NCBI GenBank assembly: GCA_037447605.1
Contig: CM074806.1
Span: forward strand, 3,162,001-3,226,000
DNA: 64,000 bases
From: Zygnema circumcarinatum SAG 698-1b
Taxonomy: Eukaryota > Plantae > Zygnematophyceae
Reading direction: 5' to 3'
Shown here: positions 756 to 57,938 of the stretch, one piece after another
How the letters are laid out: each line of letters begins with the position of its first letter
Numbering within the stretch: the first letter of the stretch is position 1
Program-made: the position numbers and the translations under genes
The notes under the pieces: generated by a model
Databases searched by the model: none
What the model was told of the DNA's origin: nothing
What the model saw: the letters and a program-made list of their open reading frames with translations, nothing else

Positions 756-1599
756 AATAGGTATTTTTTTTTTTTTTTTTTTACCAGCAACCCACCTTGT
801 GCTGTAATCAGGCATTTTACCCGCTAAGGAGATAACTTGGCGCACAGTGCACCGAGCAGCCAAGGCAGTTGCTTGCTCACTGTTCTGTTCGTAACATTAT
901 GAAATGTAATTGTGATGCTGCAAGCTTTTGGGGAAATAGTTTGACCTCCAAACGGCTCGTTGCATGGAGTTCTGATAGCCAGAGAGAGGCAGTTGCATGT
1001 CATCTGATGTGGAAGTCTCTGCCTCGTTAATTGCTAAAGATGTTTACAGCGTCATAAAGAAGAAAGTTTCCTTGCTTGATAAGGTCGACTATACACGTGA
1101 TTTCAGAGCAAATAACAAAGTCTCGCGGCGCGGGCCGCAAGTTAGAAGAAGCCATAGCAATACCACAAATTCCATATACTTAAATTCATACAGTGCACAG
1201 ACTTGAGTTTCCCTATACAACCAGAGGAACAGCTGTGCGCTTGAGAAACTGGGGTTCCTGCTGCTGCTGCTGCTCTAAGGCCTGAGAACAAAGCTCCTCA
1301 CAAAAGCTCTCCCCTCTCCTACAAGGGAGATGGAGCCTACCGTTTGCATGTGTACTATTATCTACCCTCGCTATAGCTAATACCTTGGGGGATCGACTGA
1401 CCAACCGCATGCTGTCACCTTTCAAAAAATCAAGTACAACGAAGCTACGAAGAGCTACGAAGTTCCCTTGAAAAGCCTATCCCTAAACTATCTCCTACCG
1501 GTCATCTGGGCACTTTCAGCATCAAGTAATTTTTCTCTGTACATTGCTCGAAGGTGAGGTCGTCCATGGGAGCCATGGACGGTGGCAGGTGGCAGTCCG

Positions 1600-2572
1600 T
1601 CAGAGCGTGGTCGAGCAGGAGACGTAGAGGTCGTTGCCCTCCGGCATGTCGGGGGTGTAGCCCGTGAGGACGCTGACCATCTGGCACTTGGCGTCGTCTG
1701 AGATGGGGGCCACCTTGCCGTCCTCCCAGAGCGTGGCCACGCAGCGGTCCGAGTTGGCGGTGCAGGCGGCCACGCAGCTCTCCGCGCTGTCCGCGAAGTA
1801 CGCGTCCCACACTCCCACAGGGAACGTCGCCAAGTGCAACTCGTAGCCCGCGATCACCGCGCCGCACCCGGCTGCACTCACACACGGGGGAAGGGGGGGG
1901 TCAGGCAGGAGCTGGAAGCATGCCGTGGGGTAAATACAGCTGCTAACATCAAGGCCAATTGCATTCATTCAACTCGAGTGGCCAGGGCTATGGAAGTGGA
2001 AGGGGTGGAGGGGTAAAGGCGCACTGTTGCAGGGCGTGTAGAGGTCGACGCCGTCCGGCATGCCGGGGACGAAGCCGGTGAGCTCGCTGACGAACTGGCA
2101 CTTGGCGTCGTCGGAGTACGGCAGCACCTTGGCGTCCTCCCAAAGAGTGGCCACGCAGCGCGCGGAGTTGGCGGCGCAGGCGGCGGCACACGCGGCCGCG
2201 CTGTCGGCGAAGTACGACTCCCACTTGCCCTTGGGGAACGTGTTGCTGTGCTTCTCCCACCCGGCGATGCTCGCTCCGCAGGCAGCTGGCAGAGGAGACA
2301 GCCCAGACCGCGCGCCGTCAGTACCCCATCCGCCATTCTGGTCACGCAGGAGCCATGGCCCCGCTGAGCTGGCAATGCAGGGATGGCAAAGGGCAGGGCA
2401 AGAGAGGGCACGCACTCAAGTTGGTGACAAAGCTGGAGGCGGGAGCTGCGTCGGGGTTGACGTCCACGGAGGCGGCCGAGAGGGTGCCTGTCGACAGCTT
2501 GCGGGGGGCGGCCATGGCCACACCGGCGCAGGCGAAGGCCAGAACGGCCAGAAGCACGAGTGAGCGAGCCAT
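1600..2572 (-). CDS. Secreted protein with two tandem six-Cys PAN/apple-like domains, left copy (229 aa)
   Basis: Exons 2416-2572, 2025-2285 and 1600-1871, GT-AG introns, both phase 1. Signal peptide MARSLVLLAVLAFACAGVAMA. Each repeat has Cys spacing C-x29-C-x3-C-x6-C-x18-C-x22-C. Confidence 0.9.
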
Positions 2573-3190
2573 GGCGGCCTGGCGGGGGCTGGCTGCGGAG
2601 GAGGAAAGGATGCGAGGGGAGGCGGAGGCGGAGGGAGGCGCTGAGGGCTTGGCCGAGAGGGGTCGCGGCGCGGCCCTTATGGCCGCGGGGGGAGGCGCGG
2701 AGGCTGCCACGTGGCGCGCAGTCCGGCGGTCCGCGGTCTGCGGGGCGGGCTGCCACGTGGCGCCTCCGATTGGCGCGCTCATCTCTCGGCGGCGCCGTCT
2801 CGACCGTCCGATGAGCGCACGAGGGCGAACGGGGAAGGGTGACGTCAGCGTTAAAATACGGCACCAATCAGTTGAAGCGGTTCGAGATTGACGTCAGACC
2901 ACTCGTGACGAAAGGCATTCAGATCGACGGTCAGGATGCAGCGGCGGTGTACGGACGTGGACGGTGTACGGCGGCGGTGGACGGTCGACCGTTGCCACGT
3001 TGCCGCGCGGCGGCGGTCATATAAAGACAGCGCTGCGGCACCCTCAAACGTCATCCCCGCCTCGCTCCTTCTCCCTCTCCCTCTCACTCCCCCTCTCTCC
3101 TGCCGCATCCGCTGCCCGTCTGCTCTTTCTCGCTCGTCGCAGCCTTCAGAGCTTCACTCAACTCAGCGTGACATTCACCGACAGGCTTCC
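2573..3190. promoter_or_regulatory. Putative bidirectional promoter between the palindromic gene pair
   Basis: GCCACGTGGC at 2706-2715 and 2752-2761; TGACGTCA at 2840-2847 and 2889-2896; CCAAT near 2864 and ATTGG near 2769; TATAAA at 3020-3025 oriented towards the right gene. Confidence 0.6.
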
Positions 3191-4163
3191 ATGGCTCGCT
3201 CACTCGTGCTTCTGGCCGTTCTGGCCTTCGCCTGCGCCGGTGTGGCCATGGCCGCCCCCCGCAAGCTGTCGACAGGCACCCTCTCGGCCGCCTCCGTGGA
3301 CGTCAACCCCGACGCAGCTCCCGCCTCCAGCTTTGTCACCAACTTGAGTGCGTGCTCTCTCTTGACCTGCGCTTTGCCATCCCTGCATTGCCAGCTCAGC
3401 GGGGCCATGGCTCCTGCGTGATCAGAATGGCGGATGGGGTACTGACGGCGCGCGGTCTGGGCTGTCTCCTCTGCCAGCTGCCTGCGGAGCGAGCATCGCC
3501 GGGTGGGAGAAGCACAGCAACACGTTCCCCAAGGGCAAGTGGGAGTCGTACTTCGCCGACAGCGCGGCCGCGTGTGCCGCCGCCTGCGCCGCCAACTCCG
3601 CGCGCTGCGTGGCCACTCTTTGGGAGGACGCCAAGGTGCTGCCGTACTCCGACGACGCCAAGTGCCAGTTCGTCAGCGAGCTCACCGGCTTCGTCCCCGG
3701 CATGCCGGACGGCGTCGACCTCTACACGCCCTGCAACAGTGCGCCTTTACCCCTCCACCCCTTCCACTTCCATAGCCCTGGCCACTCGAGTTGAATGAAT
3801 GCAATTGGCCTTGATGTTAGCAGCTGTATTTACCCCACGGCATTCTTCCAGCTCCTGCCTGACCCCCCCCTTCCCCCGTGCGTGAGTGCAGCCGGGTGCG
3901 GCGCGGTGATCGCGGGCTACGAGTTGCACTTGGCGACGTTCCCTGTGGGAGTGTGGGAGGCGTACTTCGCGGACAGCGCGGAGAGCTGCGTGGCCGCCTG
4001 CACCGCCAACTCGGACCGCTGCGTGGCCACGCTCTGGGAGGACGGCAAGGTGGCCCCCATCTCAGACGACGCCAAGTGCCAGATGGTCAGCGTCCTCACG
4101 GGCTACACCCCCGACATGCCGGAGGGCAACGACCTCTACGTCTCCTGCTCGACCACGCTCTGA
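3191..4163 (+). CDS. Secreted protein with two tandem six-Cys PAN/apple-like domains, right copy (229 aa)
   Basis: Exons 3191-3347, 3478-3738 and 3892-4163 (690 nt, open frame, stop TGA). Differs from the left copy by one residue (WEAYF vs WDAYF). Confidence 0.9.
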
Positions 4164-7100
4164 CGGACTGCCACCTGCCACCGTCCATGGCCCCCATGGA
4201 CGACCTCACCTTCGAGCAATGTACAGAGAAAAATTACTTGTTGCTGAAAGTGCCCAGGTGGCCGGTAGGAGATAGTTTAGGGATAGGCTTTTCAAGGGAA
4301 CTTTGTAGCTCTTCGTAGCTTCGTTGCGCTCGATTTTTTGAAAGGTGACAGCATGCGGTTGGTCACTCGATCCCCTAATACATTAGCTTCAGTGAGGGTA
4401 GATGAAGGGCACATGCAAGCGGTAGGCTTGAGAGATGATTTAGTCCACAATATGGCCCTTGGCTTGTATAGCATATCAGGACCTAGTCGTCCGATGCCGT
4501 AGACATTCAGGAACATCTAATGTAATCATCCTGTATGAAAGGTTTTTTTCAAGGTTTTTTTATTTTCAAGATTTACATTCTGTCCCAGAATTTTCAAGAT
4601 CAAGTTGGGAAAAGGTAAGAAAAAGGAAAGGAGAAAAAGTAGTTGATATTTTGTTTCTGGTACACCGGGTTTGGCTGGTTGTTTTGACAGTAAAAGCTCC
4701 CTCTTCATGGTAATGCAGTACATTGATATGCGCTATAGGAAGTGTTTGTCAGCGGGGCCGAAGCGGCACGGCTCGACTTGGACAAAGCATCGCGCACAGC
4801 TGTTGACAACCAGCGAGGAAACGTACCCAGGATGCGAATTTAGTCAAAAGAAACAAAAGCATTGATAAGCGGTCATGGAAGTTTGGAGTACATTGTAGTG
4901 GTGATACCGAAACCAAGGCGTTTCAGACATGCTGACGTCGACATGTTGACTTAAGAAAGTGACGAAGAGGAGGCCCACTTTTATTGTTCACCCTGAGCTT
5001 CCCTACCAAGTCTATCGTAGTCTCTTTAGCGAAGTTGTCTCTATCGAGACATGCAGAGAGCATAGATATAGCCATTGCACGTCGACTGGACAGGCGTGTC
5101 GACTAAAGGACATCGTTGGGAATGAAGTTTGTGTTGCCTTTATATCTATGCTAGAGGATAGAAGCTCCTCGCCTTGCCATTCAGAATAGGCATTTGGGAG
5201 TGTGTTCCCTCCTGGCCGTAGAGCAGAGTGCACAGCTGCATCAGGCTTGAAGAGAAAATTGAAGCCGCAGGCAGCAATGCGCGAGACAGGCAAGAGTGTT
5301 CAGCAACGAAGTATATGCAGTTGGCCCTTTTACTTGTTGGTCTGTCTGCATGGGAGGATGCAGCATCTCCCACTACGAGCAGTCACATCACGAGCAGGTT
5401 GTTGAACAAGCAGCTGTCGAGGCAAACTGTGGGCGAGCTGGCTATGCGCAGAGACAAGTTGCACCAGAAGACTCAGGCTAACTCACGCAGACGCCTGAAG
5501 TGCATGCGAGAGAGGGGAGTGGAAAACGGGGAATAGGAGAGAGAGAGAGAGAGAGAGGCAGAATAAATGTTTGGGTGGGACGAGAGAGGTCAAAGACGAG
5601 CGAGAGTCACAGGCGTAGGGAGCAAGAGAGAGTTCATCTCTTCCCCCCCACAGTAAGAAGGGAAATCGAGAGCTCGCCCAATCCGTATTGCAAATCACAA
5701 GAAGTGAAGCTTCCCATGAAGTCAGCTCATCAGCTCACAGAGCTTCCACTTATGGTTTGCCAATTGAACAAGAGCAGCGGCCTATCGATGGCTGTGGTTG
5801 ACAGAGACGGGCGGTAAACCACATGGAACATCACTGACTCCTTATGGCAGCAATATCCAACAGATACACTTCTCATTCGGAAAGCCCTCATACCTATTTC
5901 CCCAATGCTCCAACAAAGTAGCCTCAGTCCATTCACAGCATCACTACATTTCTCTCTATCTCACGTGAGCATCAACCGCATCCACCAGCCATTTTTTATG
6001 GCACCGGCATCACCTCCCCCCTGAAATAAACAATCACACAATGTGGTCTCTATAGCAATCTATGACAACCTAGTCAGCATACCATCCCAGCCAAACCTAC
6101 CTACGATATCCTTACTCCCCAGTACCTTTCCATGCATGAACAAGGAAGTTTCAGTTAGAGAAACCCTAACTGAGACTAAGAAGAACCCCTCACTGCATCC
6201 CTGTCACACGCCTGCCAGCGCTGGTCCTACATGCATCCAGGAACTCGTTAGCCAGGGGAGCAGGAATTGAAGCCTTGCCCGGAATGGACCTGAAAAGGCA
6301 CCAATGACTTCTATTATGGAAAGCAATAAGACTTATGCAGTTCAAAAGGGTACAGCTTCCTCCGCCTACTAGACTCCTCAAACGAAATCATCAATGCCCA
6401 GCGCCCTAATGAGTTAGAATTTCCTTGCCTGACAAATGGCAACTAGCCGTAAACAAACAAAAATTGGAATATAGAACTGGAGTGGTCACTAACGGACGGC
6501 AGTTCAACGCATCTGAACCGCAGCACCGGTTTTCACATAGAGACTACGAGTAAGTCTACTGAAGGTGCAAATATTTAAGGTCAGTGCAGGCGCAAAGAAC
6601 CGGAGGTAAAAGTGGTGTGCATATTTCTGGAACACTAAAAAGCCACATGTACTGGGGCAGGGCAGCAAGGCGGCAACCAGCTTGCCTCGTGCAAAAACAG
6701 CTTAAAACTCAACTCAACTTGGCCCTGACTATGCTCAGGATGGCAGTTTTTCCCCTCCAAGAACCAAACACCATATAATTCAGTACCAAGCCGCACGTTC
6801 TCCTCCTAGAACATAAGCAGTGAGTAAAGTTGACGACTAAAGTTTTCTGATTAGCTCAAGACTTGAAGATATCAGAAAAGCGTTAATTTTAGTACAGTAG
6901 CGTAATTTTCCCAAGCCACAGTAGTCTGTGGTTCATGGCGATAGTTAGTCGCAAGTAAATTCACATTCTTGTCCAAATGACAAGGAGTAAATAGCATCTA
7001 CAGTGCAAAAATTAACGCCCCCACAGCCCTATATAATTAAAAAAACCAAATAACCCACAACAGCTCCACAGAAACGGTGCATAACAATTCAACTGTGGAG

Positions 7101-8166: not shown

Positions 8167-8895
8167 TTAAACTGGCACGATCTCTCCATTTGTATTACCC
8201 TCCAGCCCGAGACTCTTCATCGCCTCTGCTGCTTTGTCCACGTCTCCTACCACACCCAGCACTACCTCCTCCTCGTCTTGCACTCGGCCCAGTTCTTCTA
8301 CTGCCAGCTCATAGCCTTGGTCAGCAGCCTTCTGCAACAATCCTTGCCCTTTGTCGCGGTCCTGCGTAATGCCTCTCCCGTACTTGTACATGAGACCGAG
8401 ATTGTACTGCCCTCCTGCGTCACCTTGCCCAGCAGACTTCTCAAACCATTCATGTGCTATCAAAAATTCTTGTGCCAAATGATACATCACGCCCAGATTG
8501 CACTGAGCTTCTGGGTGCCCATTCTCGGCTGCGATTCTGAACCACTTCACGGAAAGAGTCAAGTCCTTTGAAACTCCCTCGCCTGACTCGTAGGCAAGCC
8601 CTAAAGCATTTTGAGCCTCCGAGTTTCCCTGTGTCGCTGCCTTCAAGAACCACTCTGCCGCTTTCTCTAGGTCCTTCTCAACGCCGTCTCCATCTCTGTA
8701 GCACATGCCGAGCTCCATTTGGCCCGCAGCATCGCCCTGGTCAGCTGACATCCGCAGGTATTTGATACCGAGCTCCAGATTCTCCTCTACACCCTCCCCC
8801 GCCAAGTAGTACCCGCCAAGTCGCAACTGCGCATGTGCATCTCCACCATTTGCTGCCTCCGTCAGCTTTGCGATGGTTTTTGCTGAGGGAGCCAT
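8167..8895 (-). CDS. Sel1-like repeat (SLR/TPR) protein, 242 aa, single coding exon
   Basis: Five repeats of the type A/GQxxLGxxYxxGxGVxxDxxxAxxWxxxAAxQG; the fourth is shortened. A splice acceptor (ttttag) lies 3 nt before the ATG, so an upstream exon is likely. Confidence 0.9.
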   Translation of the reverse strand: MAPSAKTIAKLTEAANGGDAHAQLRLGGYYLAGEGVEENLELGIKYLRMSADQGDAAGQMELGMCYRDGDGVEKDLEKAAEWFLKAATQGNSEAQNALGLAYESGEGVSKDLTLSVKWFRIAAENGHPEAQCNLGVMYHLAQEFLIAHEWFEKSAGQGDAGGQYNLGLMYKYGRGITQDRDKGQGLLQKAADQGYELAVEELGRVQDEEEVVLGVVGDVDKAAEAMKSLGLEGNTNGEIVPV

Positions 8896-13490: not shown

Positions 13491-15658
13491 TCAAGCACAG
13501 GAGCTACAAACAATGAGTAAAGGCAGCAGCGTAGATTTAATGGAAAGGGAGAGGGCTTCAGCCAGAAAACTTTCTCGCTGCAGCAAATGCTCATAGGCAC
13601 AGTGGACCCAATGCTGTTCAGCATACATGATCAACCATTTTGATAATTTTGGTGCCACAAAAATGGAAGGAGCACATATGGGAGGCAGGAGATCTTCAAT
13701 CAACCCGTATGAAGTGTCTGAGTCCGCCGTAAACTTCCAATTCATCAACACAAGTTTCACCAGCAGAAGTGGTACAATAAATAAAATGGAACTTTCAGAA
13801 GTATATATTCTTCATGTCCCATTCATACGATTTCCATTCATTCTCATCATCCTCTACACATTCTCTTTTTTTCTACTTCCCTTCTGTCCTCTCCTCTCTT
13901 TCCTCTCTCCATTCCCTTGGGGAAGGGGAAGGGAAGTGGAGGGGAAGGGGAGGGGAGAAGGGGAGGAAAAGGGGAGGGGAAGGGGAGGGGGAAAGGGGAG
14001 GGGAAGGTGAGGGGAAGGGGAAGGGAGGGGAAGGGGAGGGTTAGGGTTAGGAAGCTGAAAGGCTTCTTCGTCTGCCTGGGGAGGGGAGGAGAGCAGAAAG
14101 GAAGAAATATGGGCAAATTATGGAACAAGGAGAGGACAAGATCTGGCTGCTTTGCAAAACCAGCATGAGCATGAACATACCAAGGAGGTGCTGCAAAAAC
14201 CGGCAGAGAGAGAGCCATCCAACAAGAAAAGAAAAACACTTTTGTTCTTATGAAAGAAGTACAATTGAGGACAACGCTCATAAACCAACGCGACGACTGC
14301 ACAACATTTCCTGCGAACGCTTTATTGCACTCTCATTGAAAAAAAATCAAATGAAAAATGAAAAATGAAAAATGAAAAATGAAAAATGCTGGTCAGCCAG
14401 TTCCATGTTTAGCTATACTCTTGAACTGCACTTTGAAATTGAGGAACGATGGAAACTGCAAACATAATGATGTTGCAGCAAAAAAATCGCACTCAATCTC
14501 CCAAAGTCTGAGCAAACTAAACTGAAACTGAACCTGAAGCTGGCGTAGACATCGACTAATGAAGGAATGCAAAAGTGCAAACACTGTACATCAAAATGCA
14601 AAATTGACGTGCAACTAAAACTAAAACTGAAGCTGAATCTTCCCATTCGCTTTGGAGCTTTCAAAAGGCGTCTCCTTTGCTCGCCACATATTGTAAGCCT
14701 CCAAACAATCTCTCTTGAATTCCTCCGCAGTCTTCAGCTTCGCTGACTCAACCATTGCTTTAAACTCTCAAGGACAGAGCGAACACTTGAGGTTGCGGCC
14801 ATCCTTAGATGGCAAAAAGACCCCTCTCGGGTCACTCCACATGGGATGAAGTGGTTTCACCGGAGTTTTCAGCGATTTCGGGGCAAGTCCAAATTCACGT
14901 GCCAGCCCGAGAAACGATTCCTCTCGCGATCCCAATCATTCAACCTTTCACGAATAGAAGCTAATTCAGCTATTTCTTGCCATTCTTTTTCCTGCTTCAT
15001 TCTCCAAGAGGAGAAGCTTTGCGGGATGGGACTTGGCAAATTTACTGCCATTCGCCTTTCCCCCTCCCGAGTACTACTGTGGCGGCGGCTGTATTGCGGC
15101 TCACGGAACGCCAGTTGGCTCGCACTGAACACTGATGAGTCACGGAAGCCGGACTGCCTGGCACTAAATGGCGGCTCAGGCTCAGGCTCATACAGCCTGG
15201 ACTGCCTGGTATTAAATGGCGGGTGAGGCTGATAGAGCGGCGAGTAATATGCGGGATCTGTCTTCACGGTCGGGGGAACCTGTATTGCCAACAAGAGACA
15301 ACAAGCGCCACATTAGTCCAGCATATGCATACCAACCCAAAAAACTCATCCATACAAAAGCAAGCACCAAGGCAATGAACTTTTTGATGCTAACAACCCT
15401 AAAAACAAAAGGCTTGAAAGCTTTATAAGGTGGAGCAGGTCATACCCGGCGAGGATTGGCTAACTCCCTTGCGAACTCCTTGTGCAGCCAATCCACAACG
15501 GAAAGGTATGTCTTTTCGACTTCTTTGGCACCCACACCCAGCCAGAACCAAGCCGTGTCCAGCAAGCTGTATCCAAGATTTTCCATGACGACCAGCCATG
15601 GGACACTGCAAAAATCGAAGGCAAGGTCTTCAAGCTGCGTGCGGGCCGCTACAGCAGC
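13491..15658 (-). other. Coding-like segments of an uncharacterised or decayed gene
   Basis: Candidate exon 15446-15658 (AG/GT bounded, 71 aa) splices in phase 0 to a candidate exon starting at 15279 (VPPTVKTDPAYY...KQEKEWQEIAELASIRERL). Further protein-like blocks occur near 14640-14770 (AEEFKRDCLEAYNMWRAKE) and 13491-13735. No family recognised; there is an in-frame stop between blocks. Confidence 0.3.
13920..14040. repeat. G/A-rich low-complexity tract (GGGGA/GGGAA units)
   Basis: Many G3-G5 runs separated by A; read directly. Confidence 0.8.
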
Positions 15659-15765
15659 CTTTCAAACCTGCTGCTGAGGCTGCTGGGTGAGCAGTTGCAT
15701 CCTGCAGCCATAAAGCGCACAAATAAAGCAGCTGCAGCCTTCTGCACGGTACATGGATGAGCAGG

Positions 15766-17999
<2,234 letters not shown>

Positions 18000-18100
18000 G
18001 AGGGAGAAATGATGGCCCGGGCCGGAGGGCGTAGCCTTGGGGTGGGCCCCGGGCAGCCCTGAAATGGTTTTGGCTGCCGTGTGCGCGACGTAAGCGTCCG

Positions 18101-18565
18101 CGATTGGGCGAGCGCCATCCGGGCAGCTCAAGGTTGGCCGCGAGCTGCCCGGAAAGGAAAGGTGTGGCCCAAAATGGTGGACCGCGCGTCTACCTCATCT
18201 CAAATCTTGGATAAGACTGTACGGACAGACAGGTGGCGCCACCGCCGTGGGGGAATGGTGCGTACGGTACGCGTGACGTGACGTGACGCGCCGAAGGGGG
18301 GCTGCACCTGCTCGTACTCGCGGCGAGGGAGGACCGGAAAGAATTTCAGCTGCCCGGCCGACGCTCGCCCAATCGCGGACGGACACGGCAGCCGAAGTCA
18401 TTTCGGGCCATGCGTTGGACGGGCCATGGGTTGGATCAACCATTGGATCCAATGGTTGCGATTGGGCGTGCGTCGTCCGCGAAGCTCAAGGTTGGCCGCG
18501 AGTTGCCCGGGGAGGAAAGGTGTGGCTGAAAACGGTGGGCCACGCGCGTACCTTATCTTCAAATC
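18101..18565. repeat. Two diverged ~106-bp direct repeats (18101-18206 and 18459-18565)
   Basis: Both read cgattgggcg...gctcaaggttggccgcgag(c/t)tgcccgg...ggaaaggtgtggc...aa(t/c)ggtgg...cgcgcgt...caaatc. Confidence 0.8.
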
Positions 18566-34575: not shown

Positions 34576-35480
34576 TACACACATTTTCATCGCGGCGTGC
34601 ATCGACCGTTCTTGTCTGCGCAACAGAATGATTTTGCCTCTAGTCATTTTCCTGGCGAGTCTGGCGACTCGCTGATGATTCCAGTGTTCAACGCTCCGTC
34701 AACTGGCTAAGGACGTGGCTTAAAGACGCGCGAATGTAGGGAAGCAGCGTTAAGTGTTTGTATGATTACCAGTTAAAGTCTGTTTACGCTCTCTTATGTT
34801 TCTTTTGTCTGCCAAGAAAGCCGATGTGATCTGCTTGCATTGGTTCACCCAGAGCACCATAGTGTAAAATATGCTGTTTCAGAAAGGCATGCCAAGAGTG
34901 CAAAGGGGAACAACAGAGGGTTGTGGGCCTTTTGAGACGGTAGTAATGCCAATCGCTTGTTTGATATTCGAAAAGTTAAAAGAGAAAGGATGTGGCATAT
35001 TTGAAAAGTTATTTTCCATGCCAGATTCCATCCTGTGTGGAGCATTTAGATGGTATGCGTCTTGGTTGCGCTCTCCTTTGTTTCCAACTGTGCGACCAAA
35101 TATGTGTTGAAGGCTTCCAATGCGTCCATTTACTGAGTTTGAGGGTCATAGCCTTCTGAATCATCTGATGCATCCTCGCCTTGTCTTGTTTCCTCTTCCT
35201 TGATTTGAACCAACCCCGCACTCGTCCTGAATAATAATTATATAAGCAGGGCATGTCAGACTGCAAAATCAGTCTGGAGCACTGGAGAAACACCTTTCGT
35301 GGATATAATTTCAAACGAGTATGGTCCTCTGGAAACACAACGATCCAACTGCAAATCTTTTTTCTATAAAAATAAAATAAAAAGGAAACCCTCTCCTTCG
35401 GCATTTGCAGCTTCTGACCCGCTCGCCGTCCACAGGGAGTGGCAGCAAATATCAAAATAAGAAAAGAGTTAGAATCTTAC

Positions 35481-35553
35481 CGCGCCAGACAGGGGTCGAA
35501 CCTGCGACCTTTTGCTTAGGAAGCAAACACTCTATCCACTGAGTTACAGGCGC
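35481..35553 (-). tRNA. trnR-CCT: tRNA-Arg(CCT), copy within the probable artefactual duplication
   Basis: GCGCCTGTAACTCAGTGGATAGAGTGTTTGCTTCCTAAGCAAAAGGTCGCAGGTTCGACCCCTGTCTGGCGCG: cloverleaf, anticodon CCT, TTCGA loop, T-run downstream. Confidence 0.9.
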
Positions 35554-37707
35554 ATCTTATTTAAAAATTACTGTAATAAAATATAATGTAAAAAAATAAA
35601 TATCTTCTCCCGTATCTTCGCAGCCGTCCTTTCCCCCTCGCTGGGCTGCGCTCCTCCGCGGAGAGGGAGAGGAAGGGCCGAGTGGTGGTATGCTGTAAGA
35701 GGGAGGAGGGAGAAGGTGATTGTTCCGCTCATCGCCATGGCGACCACTCGTGTGCAGGCGCTCTCCTCTGCTCTACTTGCCGCCCCCGAAGGCAGGCTCG
35801 CCGCTCTCCCTCCCTGCCGCCTCGGGTGTAACTCGTCCTCTCTCGCCTCCCTCACTCCATCTTCTCTCCGTCTGTGCTCGAAAGAAGTGTTGCTCTCGTC
35901 TCGCCACAGTTGTCTGGACCATGGCGCGCTTCATGTGGCTGCCTTCGCTTCCCCCGNNNNNNNNNNCTCTCTCTCTCTCTCTTTCCCTCTCACTCTCGGA
36001 CATACACACGCACACACTGTATGCATATCTGAACTTTGAAAGAGGTTCAACCCGCACGAGGATTACCAAATGCCATTCGAAGACCTGCCTATTTCCAATT
36101 GTTTATGGCATTTCTTCTGCAGTGAAGTTTATAATCCCGTTCCAGGAGTGATGAATGATGTCCCTGCTGCGCGAGGATATGTCGGAGGCTTTTCTAACCT
36201 CCTTATGGTGAGCCTGCTGCTCACGAGCTTACCGCAGTTAGTCTTCTTACTTTGCTTCATGGAAAAAAAAAATGTGTGTGGGCTATTTTATTTGCTTAGA
36301 TATATTTAATCCCACCCTACGAGCTAAAGCAGTGTGGATTGAGGTTCTGAGTCTTCCCCTTCTTGTGGGGTTGAAACTGCGTTGGAAAGGCCAAGGACTT
36401 GAAGCTTGCACTCGAATCTGCCATGGAGGATGGCGTTGAGGCGAAGACGCCCATGGGGTCCGCCGTGCACAGCTTGTAAGCCTGTTCTCCCCCTTCCCTT
36501 GGGTAGTTAGTCCCTACTACTGATAACATGTTGAACATGGCCGATATGATGGCGGGTCGCATGCCGTTCCCCATCAGATCCGGCAAACATTTTTAAAAGT
36601 AAAGATGATGCATGTTCAGTGATACCCATGGCAGCCACGTGGACAATTCTGTCGCAGGTACTCCGAGATGTGCATGGATGATGCAGCAAAGGCAGACTTT
36701 TCAAGTATTTTCCATTTTGTCTATGGAGGTGTTTCGGCGGATAATGAGAGAAAGGATTCGTTTCCCACAAACTCATTGCCTGAAGGGACATCCTCCCGCT
36801 AGTACACACATTTTCATCGCGGCGTGCATCGACCGTTCTTGTCTGCGCAACAGAATGATTTTGCCTCTAGTCATTTTCCTGGCGAGTCTGGCGACTCGCT
36901 GATGATTCCAGTGTTCAACGCTCCGTCAACTGGCTAAGGACGTGGCTTAAAGACGCGCGAATGTAGGGAAGCAGCGTTAAGTGTTTGTATGATTACCAGT
37001 TAAAGTCTGTTTACGCTCTCTTATGTTTCTTTTGTCTGCCAAGAAAGCCGATGTGATCTGCTTGCATTGGTTCACCCAGAGCACCATAGTGTAAAATATG
37101 CTGTTTCAGAAAGGCATGCCAAGAGTGCAAAGGGGAACAACAGAGGGTTGTGGGCCTTTTGAGACGGTAGTAATGCCAATCGCTTGTTTGATATTCGAAA
37201 AGTTAAAAGAGAAAGGATGTGGCATATTTGAAAAGTTATTTTCCATGCCAGATTCCATCCTGTGTGGAGCATTTAGATGGTATGCGTCTTGGTTGCGCTC
37301 TCCTTTGTTTCCAACTGTGCGACCAAATATGTGTTGAAGGCTTCCAATGCGTCCATTTACTGAGTTTGAGGGTCATAGCCTTCTGAATCATCTGATGCAT
37401 CCTCGCCTTGTCTTGTTTCCTCTTCCTTGATTTGAACCAACCCCGCACTCGTCCTGAATAATAATTATATAAGCAGGGCATGTCAGACTGCAAAATCAGT
37501 CTGGAGCACTGGAGAAACACCTTTCGTGGATATAATTTCAAACGAGTATGGTCCTCTGGAAACACAACGATCCAACTGCAAATCTTTTTTCTATAAAAAT
37601 AAAATAAAAAGGAAACCCTCTCCTTCGGCATTTGCAGCTTCTGACCCGCTCGCCGTCCACAGGGAGTGGCAGCAAATATCAAAATAAGAAAAGAGTTAGA
37701 ATCTTAC

Positions 37708-37780
37708 CGCGCCAGACAGGGGTCGAACCTGCGACCTTTTGCTTAGGAAGCAAACACTCTATCCACTGAGTTACAGGCGC
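37708..37780 (-). tRNA. trnR-CCT: tRNA-Arg(CCT)
   Basis: Identical 73-nt cloverleaf, 183 bp upstream of and divergent from the CBSX start codon. Confidence 0.93.
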
Positions 37781-37963
37781 ATCTTATTTAAAAATTACTG
37801 TAATAAAATATAATGTAAAAAAATAAATATCTTCTCCCGTATCTTCGCAGCCGTCCTTTCCCCCTCGCTGGGCTGCGCTCCTCCGCGGAGAGGGAGAGGA
37901 AGGGCCGAGTGGTGGTATGCTGTAAGAGGGAGGAGGGAGAAGGTGATTGTTCCGCTCATCGCC

Positions 37964-55741: not shown

Positions 55742-56659
55742 CCATCAGCCCGTTTCGTAACGAGCTCATTACGGTCCACGTAGGACGCCGTTTTGCAGAT
55801 AAAAAGACGAGTTCTGTGCACCGGCTGCAGCGAGGCTCCCCCCCTCCCCCCCTCCCCCCCTCCCCACCGTCGATCGCCACGATCGGAATTGCTGCAGCTC
55901 CCCGCCCCCCGGCCGCCCACCCGCCCTGCAGCGTCCTCCCAGGTACGGCGCAGCGCCCGAGCGGGCGACGCCGGCCGAGCGCGCGGTCACCGCGGTGCCG
56001 ATTGCCACGTAGATGCCACGGTGGCGCCACGTCTGCCACGTCGATTCCACGTCTACATGTCCATCCACGTCGGCGCCACGTCATTTAAAACCACTGAAAT
56101 TGAACTTCGGGTGTGCTCGCCGCCGCTTGCCCACCGCCCATTGAAATTGAACATAGTGTCCTGGTACCGGTAGGTCTAGAGTTCGATCTTTGCTGGAGGC
56201 GTGTTTGCTACACAGCCCGAGCGAGCGAGGGAGGCCCTGCTTGCTTGCGGAGAGCGGTGTGTGGCGGCCGCGCCCCCCCCCCCCTTACACATTACCACCG
56301 CATGTCCATCAAAACGTCGTTTTCCAATCAGCGATCGCCACGTGCACGATTTGCAGCGTCCGCCGTGGCCCACTGCCGTTACCGTACGCGCGTCGCTGCC
56401 GACAGTTTTTTAGGGTTTGCAAGAGGCTTCCAGCCAACGTGGCAGTCGCACGCTGGCGTATCTTTGGTAGCCACGTGGCGGCACGCGAATGGTCGTAATG
56501 GCGTTACACCCCCTTCTTCGGACCGTCCTGGGGAACGGTGCCTCGTTACCACGTGGCAGCCACGTCGGCGCCACGTTGGTGGAAACGGCCTGATGGAACC
56601 CATGGGTCGTCGTCCATTACGACGCCACGTCGGAATAACGGGCTGATGGAAACTGACCC
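55742..56659. mobile_element. MITE-like element A (PIF/Harbinger-like); right TIR intact, left end rearranged
   Basis: Starts with CCATCAGCCCGTTTCGTAACGAGC and ends AACGGGCTGATGGAAACTGACCC followed by TCA. It shares both terminal modules with element B. Confidence 0.65.
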
Positions 56660-56662
56660 TCA

Positions 56663-56986
56663 GGGTGGGTTTCCATCAGCCCGTTTCGTAACGAGCTTGT
56701 TACGGTCCACGTAGGATGCCGTTTTCAGATGGAACGACGAGTTCCATCAGAACGCCGTTGGCCAGCGTGGCAGTCGCACGCTGGCGGATCTTCGGTAGCC
56801 ACGTGGCGGCACGCGAATGGTCGTAATGGCGTTACACCACCTCCGGAGCAGCATCCTGTGGAACGGTGCCTCGTTACCACGTGGCGCCACGTCGGCGCCA
56901 CGTCGGCGGAAACGGCCTCATGGAACCCATGGGTCGTCGTCCATTACGACGCCACGTCGGAATAACGGGCTGATGGAACCCCACCC
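56663..56986. mobile_element. 324-bp Tourist-like MITE B with ~23-bp TIRs and TCA target-site duplication
   Basis: TCA(56660-56662)-GGGTGGGTTTCCATCAGCCCGTT ... AACGGGCTGATGGAACCCCACCC-TCA(56987-56989). It is an internal-deletion relative of element A. Confidence 0.8.
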
Positions 56987-57938
56987 TCAGTCCTTCTCGC
57001 AGTCACGTCAAGTCAAATCAAGTCAAGTCAAGTCAATTATGTCTTCCGCGAGCCCTCGTCCAATGGCATGAACCCCTCGCGAGTTGTTGTTGTACCGCTG
57101 CGACTGCGTCACGCGGGGCTCCTTTTTGGCCTTTCGTTGGTGCGGGAAAGACTTCATGCCCGCTTTATGGGAGACATCGGTTTGCTGCCCGACTCGCTGC
57201 AACCCCTGACTACCGAGGCTCACAAAGTGCGTGCTGGACATTCAGGACATGTGATGCTGAACATTGCGGTGAGGTGTAGTGGCAGGCGGGACGTGATGTG
57301 ACGAGTGCCTGCCAGCAGCTGGTCCAAAAAGGCACAGGCACATGACAACGAATTTGGCGTTGATCGCACGGTGGAGATTCCATCAAACGTACAACATCAT
57401 GTATTTCCAAAGGAATATTTCATAATGTATATTTCAGTTGGTCTGAAATGACCTATAAACGAAAGAAAAGCTCCTACAGGCACATGTGACCATCAATTCG
57501 ATTAGGATAAGTATCAATTATGAATCAACATGTGGGCAGAAGACGCCTACACGCAATTGAGCATGGCACCTTCCGTTGAGACGTGCAATGTGTGCTGGTT
57601 GTCAACGGTGGCAGGTGACGAATGAAAAGGTGACACCTCATGTTCTCAGAGTACTTATACCAAATGGAAGACTTATGAAGCACAATTTGTGGATATATTT
57701 CGCAAACCCTGCCATCCAAGACACTGATAAGAGAGGTTTTTGTACAGTGACTGCTCAAACTTGTAACCCAACTTGTTCCGCTAGTTAGGGAACGAAGTGG
57801 GATGTAAAAATATGACTTAACATGCGGACTTGATGAAGCCTGCAAATGCTCCACCTAACGCCCCTTTCTCCTCATCTCAATAATCAGTAGGGGGGTTCTG
57901 CTCTTATGGGCTCCCAATGTTCCAGGAGTTGAACTTCT

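Follow-up and report, generated by a model that had tools for sequence, protein, structure and literature searches.

The window analysed here is a stretch of 64,000 nucleotides (nt) from Zygnema circumcarinatum SAG 698-1b (contig CM074806.1, positions 3,162,001 to 3,226,000), and the element under study is a pair of near-identical genes for a secreted protein that stand head to head near its left end. We found that the pair is real: an inverted duplication that carries an intact gene in each arm and flanks a unique spacer (table 1; all positions are those of the window). A repeat search gave an inverted repeat with arms at 1360-2585 and 3178-4403, each 1226 nt long, 98% complementary and with 592 nt between them, and gapped blastn lengthened the arms to 1334-2585 and 3178-4428 at 97.5% identity across 1252 nt. 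Chance could not plausibly produce a match of 98% over 1.2 kb. An earlier reading of this DNA from the letters alone (the sequence-only reading) had described two such genes as mirroring each other (x+y=5763) between 1334 and 4428 around a 0.6-kb spacer, and the mirror test and gapped blastn reproduced both the symmetry and these coordinates. Compared base by base, the arms were near-perfectly identical over about 1398-2574, and the identity faded at both ends. The inner edge, which had been placed at the start codon, was indeed sharp but lay upstream of it, where strong identity stopped about 15-17 nt before the ATG. The 5' untranslated regions (5'UTRs) had been called almost unrelated, and in our hands the two upstream regions likewise could not be aligned significantly (local score 30 vs 21 ± 2.8 for shuffles, with a maximum of 32). 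A candidate alignment of these regions, pairing CATAAGG with CATATAAAG and the CT-rich leaders with each other, was rejected as no better than shuffles. No third copy of the repeat unit was found by blastn in the 64-kb window. Inside each arm there is also a 260-nt repeat (75%), which is the DNA of the two modules of the protein.

The right gene starts with the ATG at 3191, and the exons of the left copy are the mirror image of those of the right. A single GT..AG combination yields a protein that matches relatives. The introns are 130 and 153 nt long; all four are of the GT..AG type and in phase 1, and they start with GTGCG in both copies. The RNA evidence used throughout consists of Logan contigs from two runs (X9 and X19), and spliced contigs from both runs carry the joints 3347/3478 and 3738/3892 exactly. 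Moreover, P0001, a transcript-derived protein of 230 amino acids (aa) from a related organism, is 85% identical and has the same junction residues. The gene models, the RNA joints, and P0001 thus agree with the earlier claim that the open reading frames (ORFs) and splice sites are intact in both copies. Both products have 229 aa and, as had also been noted, differ at one residue only, which is residue 162 (D in the left copy and E in the right; nt 1804/3959). D162 is the derived state because the homologues have E or R at this position and the sister module has E. Exact-protein look-ups with the two 122-aa exon-3 ORFs returned no match.

Table 1. Coordinates of the inverted gene pair and its parts in the window.
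Feature	Position	Strand	Description
Left arm	1334..2585	-	Left gene from about -13 of the ATG to about 265 nt beyond the stop; repeat search, mirror test, blastn
Right arm	3178..4428	+	Right gene copy; repeat search, mirror test, blastn
Outermost 66 nt of the arms	1333..1398	-	Mirror at 4365-4428; identity 78-81% vs 96% in the remaining 3'UTR
Spacer	2586..3177	.	Unique, asymmetric, 67% GC; contains two unrelated upstream regions and 5'UTRs
Left exon 1	2416..2572	-	Identical to right exon 1
Left exon 2	2025..2285	-	Within the 421-nt perfect-identity tract 1920-2340
Left exon 3	1600..1871	-	Residue 162 is D (nt 1804), the derived state
Right exon 1	3191..3347	+	Predicted signal peptide MARSLVLLAVLAFACAGVAMA and linker; RNA contig 3101-3347 joined to 3478
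Right exon 2	3478..3738	+	First PAN/Apple-like six-Cys module; phase 1-1 exon
Right exon 3	3892..4163	+	Second PAN/Apple-like module and TGA stop; residue 162 is E (nt 3959)
Left-type 5' region	2573..2692	-	CT-rich in sense, no TATA; depth 156.5 in X1 and 40.6 in X5; RNA 0
Two perfect 16-nt repeats GGCTGCCACGTGGCGC	2702..2763	.	Each with a palindromic G-box/ABRE-like core; 46 nt apart
Two TGACGTCA palindromes (C-box/CRE-like)	2840..2896	.	Spacer centre, with a CCAAT box between them
Right core promoter and 5'UTR	3020..3190	+	TATAAA at 3020, CT-rich leader; transcribed from 3101 or earlier

The protein begins with a classical signal peptide, MARSLVLLAVLAFACAGVAMA, followed by AP, and this clear prediction agrees with the earlier statement that it is secreted. 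The mature protein has 208 residues (21.6 kDa, isoelectric point 4.3, 12 Cys, and one NLT sequon) and is built of a linker and two modules of 86-89 residues, which are 69% identical to each other. For membership of the PAN/Apple superfamily we required a match to Pfam PF00024 (PAN_1) or PF14295 (PAN_4) at or above the gathering score. The single modules of the window fell below that of PAN_4 (17-18 bits vs 27), and two full-length homologues passed: P0001 scored 26.3 on PAN_1 (cut-off 21.4) and P0003 scored 28.7 on PAN_4 (cut-off 27). All 10 family modules matched PAN_4 (best E 2.2e-5) and 9 of the 10 matched PAN_1. The Cys framework is C-x29-C-x3-C-x6-C-x18-C-x22-C, in which C2, C32, C36, C43, and C62 are invariant in the family modules and C85 is kept in 8 of the 9 modules that reach it; at the sequence level, the conserved cysteines of the superfamily are present. 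The neighbors found with a protein language model were PAN/Apple clusters (score 0.87, a lead only). A structure model of the module, of low confidence (predicted local distance difference test score, pLDDT, 50), had the topology beta-beta-alpha-beta-beta-beta, where the superfamily fold is one of five antiparallel strands in a sheet against a single helix, and nearly all of its top 29 or so Foldseek matches in the PDB were PAN/Apple domains (query-normalised TM-score 0.53-0.62, E 0.6-3), among them plasminogen, the HGF N domain, FXI A4, kallikrein, and the SRK PAN domain. The full-length prediction was poor (pLDDT 42), and the module profile had no match among PDB sequences up to E 10. Based on the Pfam matches and the Cys spacing, with the model topology and its Foldseek matches as a weak lead, the protein was filed as PAN/Apple. 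The best explanation is a secreted, acidic, lineage-restricted two-module PAN/Apple protein of about 21.6 kDa, which by analogy with its domain type would most likely serve in the extracellular matrix for binding or adhesion.

An exhaustive phmmer search of 1.84 billion representative proteins gave four true sources of relatives, namely P0001, P0003/P0008 (four RNA assemblies), P0002 and P0004 (one JGI metagenome contig), and P0005 and P0009 (two ENA metagenome contigs); a word-index search gave two relatives. Two further phmmer hits were spurious, one of P0006 and P0007 being a translated tandem repeat and the other a bacterial repeat protein. As far as these searches reach, the protein family is very narrow, with algal or metagenomic relatives only. 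The contigs of the relatives (L001, L007, and L008), which are too short to reveal the arrangement, showed neither an inverted partner nor synteny with the window. The sequence-only reading had raised a link to the secreted sexual-signalling proteins of Closterium. This link gained no support: the exhaustive phmmer search returned only the four sources above, and neither phmmer nor the word-index search gave any similarity to Closterium PR-IP or PR-IP Inducer, if the libraries include them.

For DNA, Logan contigs of two runs, X1 and X5, which come from separate samples and studies, were placed on the window; these contigs are unphased beyond 31 nt, and rare variants are dropped from them. In both runs, the contigs at 2545-2692, 2663-3058, and 3101-3218 had 0 differences from the window. 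The first two overlap by 30 nt (k-1) and link the left gene start to the spacer, while the third covers the right 5'UTR and gene start, the 42 nt before it (3059-3100) being masked as low complexity. The spacer contig 2663-3058 is single-copy, with a depth of 70.8 in X1 vs 54-57 for the right flank. These contigs bear on the possibility that the palindrome is an assembly artefact, whether a fold-back, a chimeric join, or a misplaced inverted copy of a dispersed family member. A multi-copy family invites misassembly, and the left outer junction is unverified, short-read contigs being missing on 793-1397. However, a fold-back, which the sequence-only reading had itself named as a refuting possibility, would yield identical arms and no such spacer. 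It is excluded because the arms differ at no fewer than 15 sites, their 5' regions differ, and the spacer is asymmetric and unique. The arms have distinct 3' ends as well, and two independent DNA samples give the joined left gene start and spacer, and the right start, without a difference. An artefact of any of these kinds is therefore very improbable.

Some observations on the margins of the arms and spacer should be recorded. The stretch 793-1397 is bare in both DNA runs and in X9, and the X19 contig 1388-1871 reaches only its final 10 nt; it may be a repeat, an effect of filtering, or a strain difference. Contigs cover the right flank in full. Immediately beyond the left arm, at 1255-1274, there is a (GCT)6 microsatellite, and the low-complexity stretch of the right 5'UTR (3059-3100) is a CT-rich leader. 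Contig ends at 1274 and 2699 were considered as structural variants and rejected, since the contigs share only a short stretch of low complexity, (GCT)n or the G-box repeat, and their continuations are absent from the window. The contig end at 2638 may represent another copy with a left-type 5'UTR.

The depth of the arms was far higher than that of their surroundings. In X1, the collapsed arm contig 1398-2574 had a depth of 369 vs 54-71 for its single-copy neighbors, and in X5 the arm contigs had depths of 122-190 vs 22-25 for the flanks, so that arm k-mer depth was 5-7 times that of the flanks in both samples. Moreover, the majority path of X1 and X5 carries variants in a third state, absent from both arms (1562A, 1585C, 1897T, and a G inserted after 1892). 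Neighboring sites, which are 1-3 nt apart and are read together, tell the same: sites 1435/1436 are TA in the left arm, CG in the right arm, and TG in the read majority, and sites 1502/1505 are TT, CC, and CT, respectively. Both X1 and X5 contain three versions of the right outer flank (4348-4462). That of the window is approximately single-copy (about 58 in X1 and 22 in X5), and the two variant versions, with depths of 105 and 70 in X1 and of 105 and 51 in X5, both continue beyond the end of the left-arm homology. The left-type upstream contig has about 2-3 times the single-copy depth and the right-type one about 1.5-2 times. There are no variants in the flanks, which indicates paralogy and not allelic variation. 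The 5-7-fold depth and the haplotypes found in neither arm therefore make the pair part of a larger near-identical family, of which there appear to be about five to seven copies per genome, the others lying outside the window. For the same two reasons, the idea that two copies serve to double the dosage gained no support.

The 15 differences between the arms within 1398-2574 are unevenly distributed. The coding sequence (CDS) has 1 difference in 690 nt (0.14%), which is non-synonymous, and none in 166 synonymous sites (0%), the introns have 6 in 283 nt (2.1%), and the core of the 3'UTR has 8 in 202 nt (4.0%). In the outermost 66 nt, identity drops to 78-81% (about 20% divergence; outer edge vs 3'UTR core, Fisher p = 0.001), and beyond them the arms have no similarity. 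A perfect tract of 421 nt (1920-2340) comprises exon 2 and 160 nt of intron (Fisher p = 0.006, the tract being chosen post hoc), and a test on the spacing of the differences gave p of 0.02-0.055. The GC content at third codon positions (GC3) is 92%, so codon selection can explain the clean exons. The clean parts of the introns and the gradient at the edge, judged by the pattern of differences, cannot be explained by selection; they are what variable-length gene-conversion tracts acting on an older duplication would be expected to produce. The uneven divergence fits concerted evolution by gene conversion together with selection on a codon-biased gene.

When polarized by the majority read haplotype, 7 changes were private to the left arm and 8 to the right, and both arms differed from the haplotype at 4 sites. 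The arms have 15 differences from each other vs 11 and 12 from that haplotype, an unphased consensus. By this measure they resemble one another no more than they resemble the family, and this argues against a purely arm-to-arm maintenance of the palindrome. The private changes are also what simple divergence would give, and they suit a young inverted duplication without conversion, in which a single event placed an inverted copy of a 1.25-kb segment, from just before the ATG to the 3'UTR end, about 0.6 kb upstream of its parent and behind a foreign promoter. The sharp inner boundary about 15 nt before the ATG and the unalignable upstream regions suit it too, and among the young linked duplicates of animals ('duplogs', PMC3194840) 20-50% are inverted pairs. 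Nevertheless, a single recent copying event does not account for a divergence of 0-4% in the core vs about 20% in the outermost 66 nt, for a perfect tract that spans intron sequence, or for the mixed combinations of 5' and 3' flank types among more than two read-inferred copies. We consider this explanation unlikely, although it deserves to be kept in mind.

The spacer differs between its two halves. TATAAA is found about 170 nt before the right ATG, and the upstream region of the left gene has no TATA box. The motif GCCACGTGGC occurs 4 times in the window vs 0.03 expected, two of the sites being in the spacer and the other two in an unrelated repeat near 56.5 kb. We infer from their letters that the spacer motifs resemble plant bZIP G-box/ABRE and C-box sites. 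The unrelated repeat, at 56300-57000, is a repeated block of about 328 nt dense in CCACGT, GCCACGTGGC, and CCACGTCGGCG; its two GCCACGTGGC sites are at 56470 and 56798 and have the G-box core in common with the palindrome spacer, and the block may represent the end of a transposon or an array with a regulatory role.

In RNA, the gene is abundant in at least one sample, as the sequence-only reading had expected. A spliced X9 contig with the right-type 5'UTR and exons 1-2 had a depth of 357 and the contig of exon 3 and the 3'UTR had 373, vs 5-27 for neighboring sequence; the same two contigs in X19, one with the right-type 5'UTR and one with exon 3, had 9.2 vs 10.3. The left-type 5'UTR (2575-2692) was represented by no RNA contig in X9 or X19, and the bin 2464-2610 had a depth of 0. 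Since the depth of the right-type 5'UTR was about that of exon 3 and no left-type contig was found, nearly all transcripts of the family in X9 and X19 are of the right type. The right copy itself is expressed, as its exact distal 3' contig (4348-4459) had a depth of 84 in X9, where the variant of another copy had 105. At residue 162, the left state (nt 1804) was found in X19 and the right state in X9. Expression of one copy only had been named in the sequence-only reading as a refuting outcome, and the 5'UTRs seen in these two runs are all of the right type. Its proposal that both genes are driven from the shared spacer gains support for the right copy, whose 5'UTR is in spliced RNA, and none for the left, whose 5'UTR was unseen in the contigs of both runs.

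These data bear directly on a fuller form of the model from that reading: a palindrome of two copies, maintained by arm-to-arm conversion, that doubles the dose of an abundant protein from one bidirectional spacer. The palindromic geometry and a short spacer with abundant G-box and C-box palindromes in pairs are as this model would have them. So are the high RNA contig depth, the intact ORFs in both copies, and the D and E states in RNA from different samples. It is nonetheless quite improbable, since the left-type 5'UTR is absent from the RNA contigs while right-type depth approximates that of exon 3, the arms are at least as close to the majority haplotype of the other copies as to each other, and the depth points to 5-7 copies rather than 2.

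Therefore, we hypothesize, with a probability of roughly 60%, that the locus is a divergent pair of paralogues within a small, highly expressed, and concertedly evolving family of about five to seven near-identical copies per genome. The homogeneous unit would start some 15 nt ahead of the ATG and end some 200 nt beyond the stop codon, after which identity fades over about 66 nt. Gene conversion would keep the gene bodies near-identical among the members of the family generally and not just between the two arms, and purifying selection, on codon use included (GC3 92%), would contribute. The flanks, the 5'UTRs, and the promoters would be free to diverge, and the promoters of the two copies may well differ in use: the right one, with a TATA box, would be active in the samples examined, and the left one, without TATA and nearer to the two G-box elements, would be silent or condition-specific.

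Several points weigh against this interpretation. The figure of five to seven comes from contig k-mer depth, which is not a copy number, and the further copies are not seen as sequence. The statistics for gene conversion are marginal and partly post hoc. The low divergence of the CDS can be explained by selection alone, and a recent duplication that broke close to the ATG would leave the same sharp inner edge. The absence of the left 5'UTR is weak evidence of silence, because the contigs are unphased and rare variants are dropped. The left outer junction has no independent support, with no contig on 793-1397, although such holes prove nothing. The function is drawn from the domain type alone, and the structure models are weak (pLDDT 42 and 50). 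A more specific version of the concerted-family hypothesis, which we offer only tentatively and regard as rather doubtful, is that a clade-restricted two-PAN gene was recently amplified to about 5-7 copies that undergo family-wide conversion and have a different promoter each, the present pair with its common spacer full of bZIP-type sites (G-box and C-box) among them, and the left copy being condition-specific and not silent. If true, the same protein would answer to several regulatory programmes, such as those of stress, light, or mating.

Elsewhere in the window, the clear gene closest to the palindrome on its right side is a single-exon ORF of 242 aa at 8167-8895 on the minus strand, which consists of Sel1 repeats (Pfam Sel1, E 8e-44). 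Positions 15630-18130 contain a (GA)n/(CT)n microsatellite, about 2.3-2.5 kb long, with long poly-LS and poly-RE ORFs in all frames. An Rfam search of the window found two tRNAs only. Both are tRNA-Arg(CCT) genes on the minus strand (35480-35554 and 37707-37781) with identical Rfam scores, 2.2 kb apart, and they are likely a local tandem duplication; a gap of 10 N (35957-35966) lies between them.

For annotation, the locus should be treated as a real inverted duplicate and not as an assembly error. Since the reads are deeper than two copies would give, the assembly probably lacks some members of the family or separates them with difficulty. The pair would also be a small and clean example of concerted evolution confined to the transcribed unit while promoters diverge. 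Moreover, a narrow and highly expressed secreted two-PAN/Apple family in a streptophyte-type alga is a candidate component of the extracellular matrix, of adhesion, or of recognition. The advance is modest, as the arrangement and the protein both belong to known kinds and no new class of mechanism is involved. Among PAN/Apple domain proteins are the CBEL-type cellulose-interacting proteins of oomycetes (PMC3532174). The window protein shares with the known members (PF00024 and PF14295; plasminogen/HGF N-domains, the apples of factor XI and prekallikrein, SRK PAN) the six-Cys modules of about 87 residues, the Cys spacing, the predicted topology, the predicted extracellular location, the tandem modules, and the Pfam matches. 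It differs from them in that its two modules stand alone, without a catalytic, lectin, CBM1, or kinase partner domain.

The divergent Hsp70Aa/Ab pair of Drosophila is an example of inverted duplicates that evolve concertedly. Homogenization between close inverted duplicates is recognized (PMC3194840; also PMC6790999, PMC3403216). Like young inverted duplicates (PMC3194840), the window pair consists of two divergent intron-containing copies less than 1 kb apart, with near-identical bodies and diverged flanks. Unlike them, its promoters and 5'UTRs are unrelated nearly up to the ATG, it belongs to a larger family, and use was observed for one promoter type only. The palindromes of sex chromosomes (human Y P1-P8, VCY) measure from 10 kb to megabases and lie in non-recombining DNA, and arm-to-arm conversion in them is documented across species (PMC6790999, PMC3403216). 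The inverted arms of more than 97% identity, the unique spacer, and the intact genes in both arms are common to these palindromes and to the one described here. However, the window palindrome is only 3 kb long, sits over 2.5 Mb into a large piece, and has arms that, by the majority read haplotype, are no closer to each other than to the other copies.

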